From: Monocercomonoides exilis PA203
Taxonomy: Eukaryota > Protista > Preaxostyla
NCBI GenBank assembly: GCA_001643675.2
Contig: LSRY02000013.1
Span: forward strand, 744,001 to 808,000
Direction: 5' to 3'
DNA length: 64,000 bases
The position numbers were made by a program, and so were the translations under genes. Below, one piece after another: positions 3,344 through 64,000 of this stretch. Position 1 is the stretch's first letter. Each line of letters opens with the position of its first letter. Under the pieces are notes generated by a model. It saw only the letters and a program-made list of their open reading frames with translations, was not told the origin of the DNA and did not search any database.

Positions 3344-6300
3344 ATGCAAGACAGCGTGATATTTGAAGTCTTGAGCCAAACTTTACGAGGCGACAAGACT
3401 GGACAAGAACAAGCTAGAAAAGTCATTCGATCGGTACGTTTTGTTTTATAAAAAATAATAATTTCTGTTTAATAACGACGAATAATCAGTGGAGAAAAAT
3501 GCCAAACTATTTTTCACATATGCTTAAATTCACTATGGATGAAAGAGTCGTTGTTGACATTCGTGTTGCTGCGGCAATTCAGTTTAAAATTGGTGTTAAA
3601 AGAACATGGAAAGAATCGAGAGATAGAGTAGACAAACAATTTGTTCGAGAAAACATCATCCCTTCATTATGTGCCGCACCACCTAAGGTTGCAAGGCAAT
3701 TAGAATTAGTGATTGAAACAATGATAGAGCATGATTTTCCTAAAAAATGGCCAAATATGATTATGCAAGTTAAACAAGCGCTTGAATCAAAGGAAATTAA
3801 ATTAAAGATATCTATTTGTCCTGTTATACTTTCTTTGTGCGGATTATATTCATCTTCACCTTCGTCAAAAGCCAAATCTTTGAATAAGGCGATTCCTATT
3901 TTTTATCATCCATTATTTCTTTCAGCTCAAGAAATACTTTCAAACATAAATTTTAATGATGAGCAACAGGCGATACTTCTAAAGAATTTTTGCAAAATAA
4001 CAAGGAACATCAATTTCTATTATTTATCATCATATTTCAAGAAGCCAGAAATGATGAGGATTGTTGTTGAAAAAATGGTTCAAATATACACTCTGCCAAT
4101 TCCGGAATCACTATATGTTTGATTGCAATAAATATTTTCTCATCATTTGATTTTTATTATTTCAATTCGAAATCCTTTTTCCAAATAGCCTGATAAAGCG
4201 CAACGCCCGCATCAGCATTGGTGGAAGTGCAAGAAAATCGCCTCTCACTTCCTTTATCACATATACAAGTCATACGGACTTCCCAACCCTTCCCAACCAG
4301 AATTCAAAGAATTCTCCTTATTCTGGATGAACAGCATAGCCAACAATCTCATCAACACAATTCTTGCTGAGCTTCACAAAGTTTGCGCCGGCAGAAAAAT
4401 GACAGACACAACAACACCTCAGGCTTCCCCAGATTCCACTTCAACTGCATCTGCGCTGGCAGAGTCAGTAGCGCCTGAGTTCGTGTCAAATTCCAATTCG
4501 TCTGTATATATGTCTCCTGTGGTTATGTTCTACTCCATCCAGATTTTGGGTCTGGGCCTTCTGCACAACGCCACATATGCCGTGACACTGAAGCCCCATC
4601 TGCCTCTGCTGCTGAACGAGATCATCATCCCAAATGCCGGTCTCACCAAAGAAGAGGCCGAGATGTTTGACGACGATCCCATCGAGTTTCTGAACTACAT
4701 CAGATGCCCTTCCACAAACGACTTGACTTCTCGTGCTGCTTCCTTGGGGTTCTTCAGGCGCCTCTGCGGAAACAGAAAGCAGACAGCACTGGCAGGCTTC
4801 CTGGACATGTTCCAGAAGCACATGGCAAAGGCCTTTGAGATTGTCTCGCAGGCAATCGCAGCTGGCCGTGTGCCTTCTCAGTTTCCAACAGACTCCGTTC
4901 CGAATCCCACTGCCTCTTCACAGGCCATCTGGCATCCACTGCAGGTGTGTCTGCATCTCCTCGCACAGATCAGCACTGTCGTGTTTCTGCCTTCGGAGTC
5001 TGCTTTTGGCTCGTTCACTCAGACAAATGCGTCTCAGACACAGTCCCCTCCTTCCATGCAGCAAATCATCAGTCCATATGACTCGATGATCATGTCACTC
5101 ATTTCAACATATGTACTTCCTCTGATGTCTTCCTCGTTCCCTTTCCCAATCCTCCGCAGAGAGGCTGCTCTGTTCATCGCCTCATATGCTCCGATGATCT
5201 CTGTCTCTCCTGCTGCCACTGCTTCTCCTTCTCCCTCTCCCTCTTCGGCTTCGGCTTCTGCCTCTTCTTCTTCTTCTGGAACATCTGGATCTTCCTCAAC
5301 TCCACTTCTTGTTGCCCTTATTGGCGCAACAGTGTCTCTTCTCGATGACCCCTCTGTGCCTGTGTGTGTGGCAGCATCTGAATGCATCACAAACCTTTTG
5401 TCTTTTGTCTACACCGCTGCTCGCCCATCTCTCTCCAACCAAACACATTCTTCGCTTGCTGAACCTTCTCCCTTCTCCATCGCCTCTCTGCTTTCCACTC
5501 CAACTGGCTCGACGTCTGTGATCTCCACGCAGCTGCTGGGGATGGTCGAGTCGTTCCTTCCTGTGCTCTTTGAGAAGCTGTTCAACAACCTGCAGCGTGC
5601 TGGCCAAGCAGCAGACAGAGTGATCATCTCCATCAACAGAGCAGTGAAAGTGGCAGGTGAGCGGATGGAGCCGTATGCCACGTCAGTCTTCACACGCATT
5701 GTGGACATGATGAAAGCGCTGCTGACCGAAAGATGGGGAGTGATTGACAAAGGACTGGCTCTGCTGAGCAAAAGGGAGGCTGAGAAGAAGGCAGCAAAAT
5801 CGCAGGAATCGCCTTATCTTCCAACGCGATCGACACTTAGCAGTTCTTCAGGAGCGAATGGAGCAGACGATTTTGACGACGAAGACGATGAAGATGCACC
5901 CGGTTCGAACAAAGACTTCGACTCGAAGATTCTGAAAGCAGCATTTGGCGATCCCGACGAGGAAGGTTTGAAGATAATGCACCGCAGCGAGCTGGCTGTG
6001 CTCAGCGAGGCGCTGTACAACATTTTGCACTTCACCAGCAAGACGCGGGTGAGCGCTGCAGATCCGAACGGCCCTCTGCTCTTTTCCCAGTTTGAGCCGG
6101 TGATATCTGATCTCCTTGTGAAAGGGCTGGAGCACAGAGACGTGGAGTTCATTGACATGTTTGTGTCCTGCTTCCAGCTGGTGTGTCTGGTGCTGCTTGA
6201 CTTCACGCCAGACAAATCGACAGCAGGCGCCGCGGGGATGTCATCAGCCGGAGGAGCAAGCAGCGCTGCAGGTGCTTCTCAAGTTGGATCTTCGAATGGT

Positions 6301-58781: not shown

Positions 58782-61700
58782 TCAATCAAAACTTGAAGGA
58801 TCAATTCCCTGCCTCTTCATCTCTTCTTTCATTTCTCCTCCAAAAAACTTTGATGCAATCACAGTCTCAGATAATCCCTTAGTTGATAAAAGCAAAAGAA
58901 TAAATACATTAAAAAAAGAAAGAAAGAAAGAGAAAAGATAGCAAGAATATTCAGAAATCCAAATTGAAAAATAAGAAATTCGCAAAAATATAGTTTTAAA
59001 AAAAATAGTTTTTAAAATTTGAAATCAAACCTTTCTTCTCCTTGTCTTCAGCATCAGCTCTCTCGACAGTGCATCTGGAGGTGATGGTGTGAATGGGATG
59101 ATCGTCACTGTCTGATCCATCGGGTCACCCGGTGCAATGTCCCAGTGGTCAAACATCATCTGCACAAACGCCTGCCCTTGTGTATACGCCCTCAAATCCG
59201 TCTCAAAGCCAAAGCTGTCCAGAGAAGGCACAAAAGCCGTGATTGTCTGCAGCGGCGTCCCAGGCAGAGGGCCTTCCTCAATCACATGCCCCCTCCTCCT
59301 CCCCAACACCTTCATAGCAGCCTGCGCGCAATCTGCCGGGCACACGATACAACACCGCAGCATCGGCTCCATCAGCCTCGGGCTTGCCAGCATCAGCGCG
59401 CCCTGGCATGCACACTGGATGGCTGCCATAATCTGCGTGGGTGCTCTGTCGCTGGATTTGGGTGAAATATTCGCTTGCACCAGGCGGAATGACACATTTC
59501 GCAGGGGCTCAGAGCAGAGCGGGCCGTCTGAGGCGACAAGGGAGAAGCCGCTGACGATGGAGCGACGGATGGAAGAGAGCGCCTTTGTGTAGTCGTCGTA
59601 GGTGTTGTAGTGGTGGATGGGGAGAGTGCTAGTGGTAGTAGTAGTAGAAGAAGTGGAGGAGGAAAGATTTGATGTGAGTGAAGAAGAAGCAGAGGATGAA
59701 GTGAATGAAGAAGAAGAAGAAGAAGAAGATGATGATGATGAAGCAACAGAAGTGAGATAATAAGTGAGTGTATCGTTGATAAACAGATTCGGAGCAGACG
59801 CATCAATTCCAGATGACCACACGCTCTGTGCCTTTCTTTTACCTTTGCTGTCTGCTTCCTCCTCCTCTTCTTCTCCCATCTCAACAATCTTCCTCCCTTC
59901 ATACTCCTGCTTAATCTCATTCTCCATCGCCTCTGCCACAACTGCAAAGGAGTTCCTTCCATTCCCTGTGACCGCCACACACGGCATCGTCGGCTCATCA
60001 CCAACTGTCTCACAAAGCGGCACAAACGGATCAGATATTTTCACCTCTGCCTTCGCAAACACCTCCCTCAGATCATACATAGCACAGTCCAAGTACAACT
60101 CCCCCGTGCCTGTGAGTGTGATCTCCCCTGTCTCTGATAGCCCTGTCGTCGCCCTGCTCGGTACATGCACATCCAGCACAGGATACGTCTTCCCCAGACA
60201 CCGCAGCCCTTCCACCAGACGCGGCGTGTCCTTCGGGTGGATCGCTTCCACTGCAATGCGAAGTGATGGCGTCGTGTTGAACTGCAGCTTTCGGAACACA
60301 TTTGGCGCTGTCCGTAATTTTCCGTTGCGGAACAGCCGTTTGTATAGTTTGGAGAATGGAGAGTGCTCAGTTGATTCTGAAGTTGCTGCTGATTTGCTGC
60401 CTTCCACATCCATTCTGATCTCTTTCATATCGTCTGAATCTTCACTATCATTGTCACTTTCGTCTTCTTCTTCCTCTTCATCCTCTTCATCTACAATCGC
60501 ATTTGTAATCGTCGCCCTCTTCGATATCTCCTGATCCACCCCTTCCAACATCACCCAGTTTCCCGGCCCCATCTCTTCCACCTCCACAAAATACCTCCCT
60601 TCCCCGACAATCACTCTCTCCACTGTGCATTCTCCTCTGTCTTCTTCATTTCGCTGTGGATGGAAGTCTTCCCTGAGAACAGCCACTCGCATCCCTTTCT
60701 TCACTGTCCCGCTGTGGATGCGCCCAAACGCCCGAAAGCGCGTGATGGGGCCTTGCGCCACCAGACCACCTCCGACAGATGAGCTGCCAAACTCAGAGGA
60801 AGAAGAAGAAGAAGATGATGATGATGATGACAAGCTTTGCTCAGCACTCTCTTTCTCTCTCTGCAGCTGCTGTGCGTGTTCCACAAGCGGATCGAGGGTG
60901 ATTGGGTACATCTTGACAATGTCTATCATCAATGGGCCTTTTGGATCCATCGCTTTCATCGCAGTAGCAAAGGGATCGCTGAACGAGCCTGAGTAGATTG
61001 ACTTGATTCTGCTCAGTGGATATGGAAGATTCTGTGAATGAGAAGAAGAAGAAGATGATGATGAGATTGAAAGTTCAGATAATTCATTAGCCAAAGCAGG
61101 AGAAGCAGGAGAAGCAGGAGAAGCAGAAGACGAATGTGATGAAGTGTTAGACAAAAGATGAGTATTTCTTCGATTTCCAGAAACAACCAGAGGATTTGGT
61201 GGCTGCACATGCTGCACAATGGATTCTACAAGTGAAGAAGGATCGCCGAAGAGCCTGGAGAACACAGCTGGCAGAAGCTCATGTGGTGAAGCTGCCAAAA
61301 TCTGGTCAGACATTTTGCCCTTTGCAAAATGAGTGGTTGCAATCGATGGGTCGATGTGCGCAGCGATGTCTTCTTCTTCCTCTTCATTCATTTTCCCCCC
61401 GTTTATTTTTCCCTTCTTCGAGTTTTCTTTGTTCAAGTTGATGTGCAGTGGAGCAAGCACATTCTTCTTGATGTCTTCCCCTGACTCTGCAAGCAGCTGC
61501 CCCGTAATTTTGTAGATTGGGTTCAGCACAAACTCGCAAAAAGTCCTTTGAATAGAACGACCTTGCAATGATTTCTTACTCCTCGCAAACCGATTCGCTT
61601 GTCTGTCGTAAAACCAGTCGCCCCACAGATGCCTCGCAAACGCAGCAGGATCTACAGACAGCCGGTGCACTTTGCAGTGCACAGCCGCAAATGACTGCAG

Positions 61701-62878
61701 GCTAAAGAGGTACCCGTGGCGTGTGGAAGCAAACAGAACATTGCCCAGCACAGGTGAAAGAACAGGGCGAGGCGGCTCTTCTGGATTGGCTAAGGATTCT
61801 TTCAGTTCCTTTTCTGGTTGTTGTGATGATCTTTCCGTTGATAAGTGAAGTGCTTGTTTGTGTATCATGCTGTTTATCTGTTGGATGACATACCTAATCT
61901 TTGCATAGGCATCGTTTGGTGGAAGTTTCAATTCCACTATCAGTCGATCCATTTTTGACAGCACAAGAATTATGTTCAAGCCATTTTGAAGAGCATCTCT
62001 TATGATCATTTCAATCTGCATCGGAAATACAATTCCCTCTGCCACATCCACCACAAGAATCACTCCATCACTCACTCTAATGGCAGCTGTTGCCTCGTCA
62101 TAAAAGTTTGTGTGGCCAGGAGTATCCATTATGTGAAGAAGATATGACTTCATTTGCCCATTTTGGACAACTAAAGAAAGGGGACAACTTTTAACAGAAA
62201 CTTTTCGTTCATGTTCATCTTTTCGCACTGCAGTGAATTGGGGCTGTTCCAGATAATTAGAATAGTTTAATATTTATTTATGTTATGATTATTGTTTTAA
62301 GATAAAGAACAGATGAGATAATAAGTGCAAGACTAATATCAAATAAACCTTCATTTGCTCTACGTGCGTAACTTTTATAAAAAGATCCATCAACGAAGTT
62401 TTTCCTGAGTGAAGTGGTCCAACAACGCAAACATTTCTAATCATTTCAGGCATTGTCGATAATTCCGCAAGAAATCTCATGCTAAATCTCGTTTCAGGAT
62501 ATTTGCTAGTATCTGTAATGACTAAATCAAAACGTTTAGTATCAACAGGTTTAACAATAGGCTCTTCAATTGGTTGTGCATCTTCATCTTGCACAAGAAC
62601 TTCTGCGCCGGGGTAAAGTGACTCTGCAGTTGGAAAGCGAGATTTCTCAACAATTGCTATATAATGTCATCGAGATTTTAAAATGGCAATTTTTATATTG
62701 AGACAAAAAATATTTAAATTAATAAACCAGTTTCATGTGAAATGGTCTCTTCTTCAACACTCAATTTATCTTCTTGCTCGCTTGGCTCTTGTTCAGATTC
62801 GCTCATAATTTCTTCACTGTCGCTAAAATCATCGCCTCCAGCGAGTAAATTGCCAAATTCATCAAACGTGGCGTCCAT
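58782..62878 (-). CDS. SNU114: U5 snRNP 116-kDa GTPase (Snu114/EFTUD2)
   Basis: Acidic N-terminus MDATFDEFGN; QDEDAQPIEEPIVKPV; G1 GPLHSGKT; G3 DTPGH; G4 SKMD; ELKLPPNDAY; SFGFETDLR; terminal KTRRRK|GLSETVIASKFF. Multi-exon. Confidence 0.95.
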
Positions 62879-63062
62879 TTCACTTATTAAGGTCAGAACT
62901 TGATCTTTCAAAAGAAACTTTCATTTTTCAGGCAAGTCACAATTTTATTTTATGATATTTAACAAATAAATGCGTTTTGAAATAAAGAAAAAAAGTTTGA
63001 TCGCACACATATTAAATAATTATCACAATTTATCAAGCTGATTTCAAGCTTTATTTGATTAA
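62879..63062. promoter_or_regulatory. Putative bidirectional promoter
   Basis: 184-bp AT-rich spacer between the divergent ATGs at 62878 and 63063. Inferred from layout only. Confidence 0.45.
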
Positions 63063-64000
63063 ATGACCAATGCATTACAGCGTAATCGCCCAATAGATTT
63101 GAGGCGCATTCACACAATCATTGACTTTAATCAAGATGAGGTTGACAACGAAATAAATATGATGAATATGATGTCGTTCCTTGATCGTCAGCCTTTTTAT
63201 TCTATGATGTCTGACAGGGTGAATAATGTATTATTTATTGGAGGGCTTTATGATTTCTTTCAGGTTGACTCCTGCTTCTTGAATGGAGGCTTTACAACAT
63301 GCCCAAACTTTCGCTTTTCAACTCCTCAACATGCTCTTTCTATATTGGAACGAGGTGACAGATATGATGTCATTATTAGTATGCATGCAACGAATGATGA
63401 AACAACATGGGATTTTGTTCGAAAAATGAAAAGTCGCCATCCAACAGGAACGATCTATCCAATTGTGTTTGAAGTTGACCAGCACTATCCAGTCTATGAC
63501 GATGACCTTCGCGTTCGTATTTTTATGTGGAATGGAAATCCTATGCTTTATCTAGCTTTAATTAAATTGGTTGAAGATAGAAAGAACATGAAGTGCGACG
63601 TTATGGACGGTGCATGTGGTATTATTTTGTATGTGGAAGACACATGCGCCTATTACTCTGAATATCTTCCCATGATTTATGGAGAAATCTTTCAGAGGAC
63701 CATGTCATTTACAGGTCGATCTGCAAAGCATGCAATCACAAGGAAGCGATCTCGACCAAAAATAGCGTTTTGCTCAAGCTTCGAAGAGGCAGTAAGGGTG
63801 ATCCAGAAATTTGATATGAAAGTTCAGGGAGTTATCTCAGACATTGAGTATCCACTGACAAACAGAAACGATGGGCCTACAAACAACTATCTAACTTACC
63901 TTCTTGACAACGGTTTCTACACAAAAGAGCAAGTGGAGAAATCAGCAGGCATAATTTTGCGTGACTTAACACCCAGAACGAAGTATTTGAGATGTGAGCC
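63063..64000 (+). CDS. Bacterial-type receiver-domain protein of the PEP-synthase/PPDK_N-associated family, 3'-truncated
   Basis: An open frame from ATG 63063 to the window end, absent from the ORF track: FYSMMSDRVNNVLFIGGLYDFF, IFMWNGNPMLYLALIKLVEDRKN, IILYVEDTCAYYSEYLPMIY, RKRSRPKIAFCSSFEEAV, GVISDIEYP. These match, from memory, the N-terminal half of Bacteroidota-type 'PEP/pyruvate-binding domain' proteins. Confidence 0.75.
   Translation, partial: MTNALQRNRPIDLRRIHTIIDFNQDEVDNEINMMNMMSFLDRQPFYSMMSDRVNNVLFIGGLYDFFQVDSCFLNGGFTTCPNFRFSTPQHALSILERGDRYDVIISMHATNDETTWDFVRKMKSRHPTGTIYPIVFEVDQHYPVYDDDLRVRIFMWNGNPMLYLALIKLVEDRKNMKCDVMDGACGIILYVEDTCAYYSEYLPMIYGEIFQRTMSFTGRSAKHAITRKRSRPKIAFCSSFEEAVRVIQKFDMKVQGVISDIEYPLTNRNDGPTNNYLTYLLDNGFYTKEQVEKSAGIILRDLTPRTKYLRCE

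Follow-up and report, generated by a model that had tools for sequence, protein, structure and literature searches.

Enzymes with a PPDK_N-type ATP-grasp domain, such as pyruvate phosphate dikinase (PPDK), phosphoenolpyruvate (PEP) synthase and rifampin phosphotransferase, use ATP to phosphorylate a histidine, and to our knowledge every characterised PPDK_N enzyme works through such a residue. Proteins of the PleD type carry tandem receivers (REC and an adaptor pseudo-REC), two CheY-like folds of which one is catalytic and one degenerate, and an uncharacterised bacterial family of ~1,000 amino acids (aa), named 'PEP/pyruvate-binding domain-containing protein' or 'response regulator receiver protein', joins receivers to a PPDK_N domain in a single polypeptide. 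Here we analyse a giant relative of this family, the receiver-dikinase-like gene of Monocercomonoides exilis PA203 (genome of 82.3 Mb in 101 contigs), which begins near the end of the window, a stretch of 64,000 nucleotides at C7:744001-808000 of the 1.86-Mb contig C7. We put the probability at roughly 0.8 that it is an expressed nuclear gene of bacterial descent, taken up by an ancestor of Preaxostyla, and that it encodes a duplicated, insert-swollen signalling enzyme.

The C7 protein shares the PPDK_N-type ATP-grasp and the K/R/T-S phosphate-binding residues with rifampin phosphotransferase (RPH-Lm; PDB 5FBS, 5HV1) and with dikinases of the PPDK/PEP synthase type, and it follows the same order as rifampin phosphotransferase, ending its core in a small C-terminal domain in which an invariant His occupies the N-terminal end of a helix. 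Unlike these enzymes, it has two receiver modules before the core and no substrate-binding domain of known type, and sequence comparison detects no homology between its C-terminal domain and the swivel domain of the dikinases. Compared with PleD, the order is reversed, with the pseudo-receiver in front, an ATP-grasp stands in place of the GGDEF output domain, and the true receiver contains an inserted helical hairpin. With the bacterial family, by contrast, the C7 protein shares the full colinear order and the same invariant receiver, ATP-grasp and His-domain motifs, at 28-31% identity over the N-terminal 700 aa, but it differs in its low-complexity inserts and tail, its nuclear host codon usage, the replacement of an E-x-E...Q motif and the absence of an adjoining glutamate dehydrogenase (GDH) gene.

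A receiver-dikinase-like family of bacteria and Preaxostyla

The first-pass annotation of the window had picked out an apparently intronless frame of 312 codons that runs off the window end (63063-64000). This frame, frame 1 of the forward strand with an ATG as its first codon, stands as the 5' part of an intron-free open reading frame (ORF) of 2,665 codons without a stop (C7:807063-815060), which continues 7,060 bases past the window end to C7:815060 and lies at L002:564-8561 of an extended segment (L002, C7:806500-816499; L002 position = window position minus 62499). A frame of 8 kb without a stop that matches hundreds of proteins at E 1e-78 lies far outside what chance would produce. The gene had been called hidden, and it is indeed absent from the ORF track, which omits ORFs that leave the source, but public gene models of the family exist (P0130, MONOS_11736).

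In a word-based homologue search with aa 1-729 as the query (best 120 of 540 rows listed), a fragment from Streblomastix strix matched at 40% identity (E 6e-116), together with more than 500 bacterial or metagenomic proteins of ~980-1,010 aa that align at 28-31% identity over ~90% of the query. The matching bacterial proteins carry Response_reg and PPDK_N, some of them also DUF5752, and BLASTP against P0003 was colinear from end to end (E 1e-82). These matches bear out the first-pass assignment to a bacterial family that joins receivers to PPDK_N, and the five motifs on which it was based are all present, on invariant or near-invariant columns of the bacterial family.

A family profile of 990 columns, built from 56 bacterial members, with insert-bearing proteins aligned piece by piece, matches the C7 protein in five ordered blocks that together cover columns 16-936: columns 16-636 at aa 41-696, 657-714 at aa 768-823, 758-803 at aa 1816-1858, 820-870 at aa 1943-1994 and 872-936 at aa 2040-2105. 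The protein opens with a pseudo-receiver and a receiver, a helical linker leads on to the PPDK_N ATP-grasp, and the last conserved domain, C-terminal, small and of alpha/beta type, carries an invariant His. PPDK_N had been predicted at the C-terminus; it is present downstream as expected, but it is central, and the conserved His domain comes after it. A further correction concerns the length: the 2,665 aa (2.7 times the bacterial length) are owed to low-complexity sequence of ~1,000 residues. An insert of ~990 aa (aa 824-1815; 26% Ser, 11% Pro) splits the ATP-grasp, smaller inserts lie at aa 697-767, 1859-1942 and 1995-2039, and a tail of ~510 aa follows the last domain. Bacteria conserve 127 of the alignable columns to at least 93%, and the C7 protein keeps 101 of these, including the receiver set and the GGK, VRSS, ED, GRWG and S..H-F motifs, while the family-invariant E778, E780, Q799 and R442 are replaced. 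Seven bacterial proteins of 1,470-1,557 aa (P0121-P0127) have an N-terminal extension of ~490-575 aa before the standard architecture; that of P0121 (580 aa scanned) had no Pfam match.

Four paralogues of the family are found in M. exilis, on contigs C7, C6 (C6:679711-689283, reverse strand, 3,195 codons), C14 (C14:62402-67819, reverse strand, 1,806 codons) and C19 (C19:511519-518757, forward strand, 2,413 codons), all of them giant intron-free ORFs colinear with the family profile. The public model of the C14 paralogue (P0130), which adds an upstream exon, is named 'putative response regulator receiver protein [Monocercomonoides exilis]'. The inserts arose independently, since they are located differently in the conserved domains of each paralogue. 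The homologue of Paratrimastix pyriformis has 1,880 aa. In a scan of one genome per species the family has at least 595 relatives, in Bacteroidota, Ignavibacteriota, Acidobacteriota, Desulfobacterales, Cloacimonadota and others and in two Thermoplasmatota archaea. The latter are two contigs of metagenome-assembled genomes (L049, L060) with full-length members that group together among bacterial rows, which suggests transfer between the prokaryotic domains too.

We then inferred trees on profile-match columns, under LG+G4 for 99 rows and under LG+C20 for 47 rows, the latter rooted on the first ATP-grasp and His-domain module of two receiver-free proteins (P0128, P0131). In both trees the six Preaxostyla rows (the four M. 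exilis paralogues, Streblomastix and Paratrimastix) form one clade with an SH-aLRT of 100, and in the rooted tree this clade falls within a node of support 99 that excludes the earliest bacterial branch. The inner topology, ((C19,C14),(Paratrimastix,(Streblomastix,(C7,C6)))), suggests one acquisition before Preaxostyla diversified, probably followed by duplications, and no bacterial phylum stands out as donor. Named eukaryotic matches among the rows listed (best 120 of 540) came from Streblomastix, Paratrimastix and M. exilis only, so that the broad vertical distribution among eukaryotes that would have spoken against a transfer was not seen there. The transfer is old, because the Preaxostyla homologues form one clade nested among bacteria, and it is not a gut adaptation, because it predates the split of the oxymonads from the free-living Paratrimastix; the lateral acquisition from prokaryotes proposed in the first pass is thus supported.

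Could the gene instead be an ancient eukaryotic one, inherited vertically and lost nearly everywhere else, or have passed from eukaryotes to bacteria? No bacterial group is specifically sister to the Preaxostyla clade, whose stem is long, and the eukaryotic distribution comes from named matches and is not exhaustive. Yet the family occurs in at least 595 places across many bacterial phyla as against a single small group of eukaryotes, the rooted tree nests the eukaryotic clade among bacteria, and the receiver, the PPDK_N domain and the operon-like link to glutamate dehydrogenase (see below) are typical of prokaryotes, so we regard vertical descent or reverse transfer as very improbable. Two points count against a transfer from bacteria as we read it: the trees are quick searches with SH-aLRT as the sole support measure, and the absence from other eukaryotes rests on named matches among the listed rows, with no taxon-labelled exhaustive search. 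With these weighed, we consider a single ancient transfer into Preaxostyla to be quite likely. It would resemble other bacterial genes of Preaxostyla, for example the M. exilis SUF system (PMC6759080, PMC10703272), which are likewise nuclear and present in several Preaxostyla.

The receiver-dikinase-like family is absent from the main text of the Preaxostyla genome papers (PMC6759080, PMC10703272), and our literature search found no paper that discusses the bacterial family or receiver domains in Preaxostyla. A supplementary table lists MONOS_11736 as 'phosphoenolpyruvate synthase', with a bacterial 'response regulator receiver protein' as its best match; it is entered there, once, solely as a false-positive mitochondrial candidate. 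The family is thus already annotated in public databases; what is new is the full architecture with the His domain, the transcribed insert, the altered presumed Mg site and the glutamate dehydrogenase link.

Host integration and transcription

The receiver-dikinase-like gene lies head to head with the gene for the spliceosomal GTPase SNU114, a U5 small nuclear ribonucleoprotein component (59025-62879, reverse strand, ATG at 62879), as had been noticed in the first pass. The identity of this neighbour is confirmed by its EF-G/EF-2 domain set and by its match to solved human U5 116-kDa/Snu114 proteins (E 1.4e-161, compared with 1e-102 for eEF2), and the distance between the two divergent start codons is 183 bp (62880-63062), a spacer that is covered by DNA contigs and presumably serves as a shared promoter region. 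The RNA and DNA runs that we aligned to the locus come from different studies and all consist of contigs, which makes them uninformative on transcription starts and on levels of expression. A 71-nucleotide (nt) GT..AG intron of SNU114 (window 62657-62727) is spliced in the RNA runs X1 and X4, and the joint is absent from the DNA runs X2 and X7.

Over the receiver-dikinase-like gene, RNA contigs follow the genome without a break in order from L002:650 (X1) or 727 (X4) to 4446 and again over 5009-6000, and the covered stretch takes in ~3 kb of the low-complexity insert. The ~990-aa insert is therefore not an intron, as the RNA contigs run colinear through it. The spacer is nearly silent, with an RNA depth of 0 and 0.83 in the two RNA runs over the bin L002:401-600. 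RNA contigs begin at least 86 nt downstream of the proposed ATG, which counts against that start; residues 20-45 are conserved with paralogue C6 and Streblomastix, and this supports the upstream ATG. The DNA contigs across 63 kb are record 7 of X2 (L002:365-4446) and record 18 of X7 (425-1910), and they show no chimeric join there; records 6 and 7 of X2 overlap by 30 nt. Composition and codon usage are the host's: GC content is 0.494 and GC at third codon positions 0.50, compared with 0.491 and 0.50 for the SNU114 exon, and the codon-usage cosine is 0.92 with SNU114 but 0.82-0.85 with bacterial homologues.

These data bear directly on whether the sequence is a bacterial contaminant or the product of a chimeric join near 63 kb. 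Its nearest non-eukaryotic relatives are all bacterial, and the Illumina unitigs break near L002:394-425, so that no single short-read contig reaches well into both genes. Against this, the contig is 1.86 Mb long and carries a spliced host gene 183 bp away, two DNA contigs cross 63 kb and the X2 records share 30 nt, GC and codon usage are like those of the host, low-complexity inserts of ~990 aa are unknown in bacterial homologues, three more paralogues lie on other contigs, and orthologues exist in Streblomastix and Paratrimastix. Contamination or misassembly, already argued against in the first pass, can therefore be given practically no weight. Physical integration and expression of the gene are borne out by the long contig, the spliced neighbour, the bridging DNA contigs and the RNA contigs, and we hold it to be nearly certain that the gene is bacterial-derived and expressed by its host.

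In the adjoining SNU114 first exon and intron (window 62601-62808; L002:102-309), a contig of the DNA run X7 departs from the assembly at 12 sites, and the other DNA run and the RNA runs match the assembly. This difference looks like allelic or strain variation.

Receiver modules, ATP-grasp and His domain

An AlphaFold model of aa 35-352, made with an alignment of 131 sequences (pLDDT 89, pTM 0.89), predicts receiver folds for both N-terminal modules. Module 1 (aa 51-173; 63213-63581, forward strand) matches PorX (Z 12.4, rmsd 2.6 over 113 residues) and RcsB (Z 11.9), and module 2 (aa 184-352; 63612-64000 and 118 bases past the window end, forward strand) matches NtrC1 (Z 10.3, rmsd 2.1 over 108 residues) and CheY4 (Z 10.1); the best Foldseek matches to the whole N-terminal model are PleD and REC-REC-GGDEF proteins. 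In the model, module 2 keeps the receiver catalytic set of acidic pair, Asp, Ser and Lys. The acidic pair, E192 and D193 (63636-63641, forward strand), is placed after beta-1 by sequence, model secondary structure and conservation, and the candidate phospho-acceptor D260 (63840-63842, forward strand) at the end of beta-3 (model strand 220-226), where 99% of bacterial rows have Asp; further receiver residues are S323/S324 at the end of beta-4 and K343 after beta-5. Across 93 bacterial rows, the columns of E192, D260 and K343 are conserved at 99-100%. The acidic residues of the VED motif and the Asp of the ISD motif, both singled out from the letters in the first pass, thus occupy receiver catalytic positions in a confident model. 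Module 1 lacks the acidic pair, with G60 and G61 in its place, and the acceptor Asp, with M107 at that position; the bacterial proteins are alike in this, and module 1 is therefore a pseudo-receiver, so that both modules have the fold but the first is degenerate. It weighs against the receiver assignment that Pfam Response_reg is not detected in the full-length C7 protein and that its first 312 and 478 aa have no Pfam match at all; bacterial homologues score 31.8-43.7 bits with Response_reg, on module 1 only. Single-sequence phmmer searches against sequences in the Protein Data Bank (PDB) gave no match with the first 729 aa, with the globular part at the C-terminus or with the bacterial ATP-grasp as query.

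The only Pfam domain in the 2,665 aa is the PPDK_N (PF01326) that had been expected downstream; it scores 50.9 bits (threshold 27; E 1.8e-13) at aa 482-667. This match spans profile positions 3-178 of 328, and the rest of the domain, past the insert, is found by the family profile only. Among solved structures, the ATP-grasp comes closest to rifampin phosphotransferase and PEP synthases (profile E 1e-10). The C7 protein retains K486, R588, E594/D595, S607 (Thr in bacteria), Q661 and R1856, and K486, R588 and S607 are the equivalents of K22, R117 and T136 of rifampin phosphotransferase, with the alignment covering the R and T region; these three residues of rifampin phosphotransferase are essential and bind phosphate (PMC4844700). 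Three columns that never vary in bacterial rows, E, E and Q, are S1836, T1838 and E1854 in C7, and N, S and K in C6. E-x-E is intact in the paralogues C14 and C19 and in the protein of Paratrimastix, and only C7 and C6 lack all three invariant residues. We take these columns to be the Mg2+ ligands D321, E323 and Q335 of Clostridium symbiosum PPDK. C7 further has H488 for an invariant Arg and F681 for an invariant Gly.

Several considerations count against an active C7 enzyme or qualify the site itself. The replacement of E-x-E...Q may mean loss of activity, and an ATP-grasp split by 990 aa might no longer fold; the placement of the Mg site, moreover, is tentative, as the profile alignment to solved structures stops short of that part. 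In rifampin phosphotransferase, however, the E297A mutant of the Mg-coordinating Glu297 is still active (PMC4844700), so the effect of losing E-x-E...Q cannot be read from the sequence. We considered a firm label of 'dead enzyme' for C7 and dropped it on account of this mutant, calling the site altered instead. With the presumed Mg site replaced, catalysis by C7 is probably altered, and that autocatalysis is reduced or lost in this paralogue is a serious possibility, to which we would give somewhat less than even odds.

The stronger proposition, that the insert and the loss of E-x-E...Q killed the ATP-grasp and left a decaying relic, at most a scaffold or pseudo-enzyme, draws on the three invariant residues missing only in C7 and C6, on the ~990 aa within the ATP-grasp and on H488 and F681. 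It sits poorly with an 8-kb frame that is intact and transcribed, and with the 101 of 127 conserved columns that are kept, K486, R588, E594/D595, Q661, R1856, the receiver set and H2091 of the C-terminal domain among them. Equivalents of the essential rifampin phosphotransferase residues are kept as well, and the Mg-ligand mutant of that enzyme is active. Finally, paralogue C6 is 52% identical to C7 and has the same pattern, which implies long retention under constraint. A dead relic is accordingly an unlikely account of the gene.

Public names such as 'phosphoenolpyruvate synthase' and 'pyruvate, phosphate dikinase', the PPDK_N domain and weak matches to NCBIfam PEP synthase models might point to a true PEP synthase or PPDK of energy metabolism. 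However, the 2,665 aa contain neither a Pfam PEP-utilizers mobile domain (PF00391) nor a PEP/pyruvate TIM barrel, and the same holds for the six family members that were scanned, of which five are full-length bacterial proteins. The NCBIfam model gives 34 bits where 883 are required, and M. exilis has separate loci with PEP-utilizers matches as well as listed PPDK genes. An energy-metabolic role of this kind is scarcely credible.

In the C-terminal domain (aa ~1943-2155), H2091 is invariant in all 133 aligned sequences, alongside a GRWG motif and an invariant Glu and Ser. In a model of medium quality (pLDDT 74), a helix starts at this His. Of the nine best matches in a wide structural search, five are of the phosphohistidine swivel type (Z 5.0-5.5), namely maize PPDK, an isolated PPDK carrier domain, Enzyme I, rifampin phosphotransferase and a related pyruvate kinase C-terminal domain. 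The catalytic His of rifampin phosphotransferase is likewise C-terminal (PMC4844700). From the invariant His, the use of a His by PPDK_N enzymes, the domain order of rifampin phosphotransferase and the pairing of ATP-grasp and His domain in receiver-free relatives, we infer a phosphohistidine carrier. Other results tell against it. A DRTGG domain leads the structural matches (Z 8.5), and a Z of ~5 is within noise for single matches; hhalign gave a probability of 0.5% against seven true PEP-utilizer swivel domains, Foldseek returned no match for the domain in the PDB, and the C-terminal profile found only spurious MASP-1 matches among PDB sequences. As the hhalign comparison was not significant, we claim no homology to phosphohistidine carriers. 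A shape search of the ESM Atlas returned members of the same family only.

The receiver-free metagenomic proteins P0128 and P0131 (~1,640 aa) each consist of two tandem modules of ATP-grasp and C-terminal His domain, and all four modules keep the K, the R, E/D-x-E, the Q and the invariant His. P0128 ends in a nucleotidyltransferase domain (NTP_transf_2), which precomputed Pfam lists for P0131 too.

Glutamate dehydrogenase link and possible signalling partners

All six bacterial contexts that we fetched by protein have a Glu/Leu/Phe/Val dehydrogenase gene next to or near the homologue, and two of them show alternating arrays. These arrays, in two Ignavibacteria-like genomes, read GDH-X-GDH-X-GDH (L018:6493-17179) and GDH-X-GDH-X (L019:7034-15667), where X is a family member. 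A glutamate dehydrogenase gene lies in the flank of 39 of 80 named bacterial loci, and 36 of 130 immediate neighbours of bacterial homologues belong to the glutamate dehydrogenase family, where our rough figure for the chance expectation is ~1%. No other family accounts for more than 3 of the 87 non-GDH neighbours, histidine kinases for 2. M. exilis has three GDH genes that are ~99% identical (C2:1786677-1787417, C11:255746-256486 and C8:582864-583604; L027-L029), at 55-65% identity to the larger-class (~450 aa) GDHs adjoining bacterial homologues, highest with Prevotella (65%). We also considered a co-transfer with glutamate dehydrogenase; the three M. exilis GDH genes are not linked to the family paralogues, a point against carrying the bacterial association over to the protist.

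How might such a protein work? The ATP-grasp and His domain would together make up a dikinase-like core, with ATP as phosphate donor to the His, and the receiver would either switch this core or accept its phosphate; in bacteria the system would be tied to glutamate dehydrogenase, and C7 may depend on the intact paralogues C14 and C19. We rate the chances of dikinase-like ATP-to-His chemistry in the family as even, and consider a role of the receiver as regulator or acceptor of that chemistry to be just as finely balanced. A bolder and improbable version would make the family a phosphorelay in which the ATP-grasp and its own His carrier replace the histidine kinase as donor to the receiver Asp and so control glutamate dehydrogenase or nitrogen flux. 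Preaxostyla would have imported this relay, with C14 and C19 catalytic, C7 and C6 acting as acceptors or regulators with an altered Mg site, and a RegA-like protein (see below) perhaps receiving phosphate.

With the receiver-dikinase-like gene, an ancient bacterial family has been added to the nuclear genomes of Preaxostyla and has brought receiver signalling to a lineage studied for the loss of its mitochondrion. It also draws attention to a widespread bacterial protein whose GDH adjacency and architecture suggest a control point of nitrogen and carbon metabolism in anaerobes, and possibly a route to receiver phosphorylation without a histidine kinase. The transcribed 990-aa insert and the loss of residues at the presumed Mg site in two of the four paralogues amount to a natural experiment on the tolerance of the ATP-grasp and on the origin of pseudo-enzymes after transfer.

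The search for histidine kinases proposed in the first pass gave a divided answer, as HisKA and HPt profiles had no match in the genome but at least one ORF with a sensor-kinase-type HATPase_c domain was found. Two full HATPase_c ORFs lie at C36:1356581-1356898 (reverse strand; L111:1315-2226) and C62:280303-280605 (reverse strand; L110:1468-2190), and the best solved relatives of the former are sensor histidine kinases (PhoR, E 1e-9). The HATPase_c genes may have several exons or divergent dimerisation domains. To judge from these ATPase domains, classical donors to the receiver Asp are possible.

M. exilis further encodes two RegA-like ORFs of 970 aa (C7:240589-243498, reverse strand, L011:590-3499; C23:70597-73506, forward strand, L012:3098-6007) in which a canonical receiver is joined to a class I cyclic-nucleotide phosphodiesterase, as in RegA of Dictyostelium. 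Each adjoins an ORF of 924 or 928 aa, of which the one scanned (L012) had no Pfam match, and the gene pair looks like a duplicated segment.

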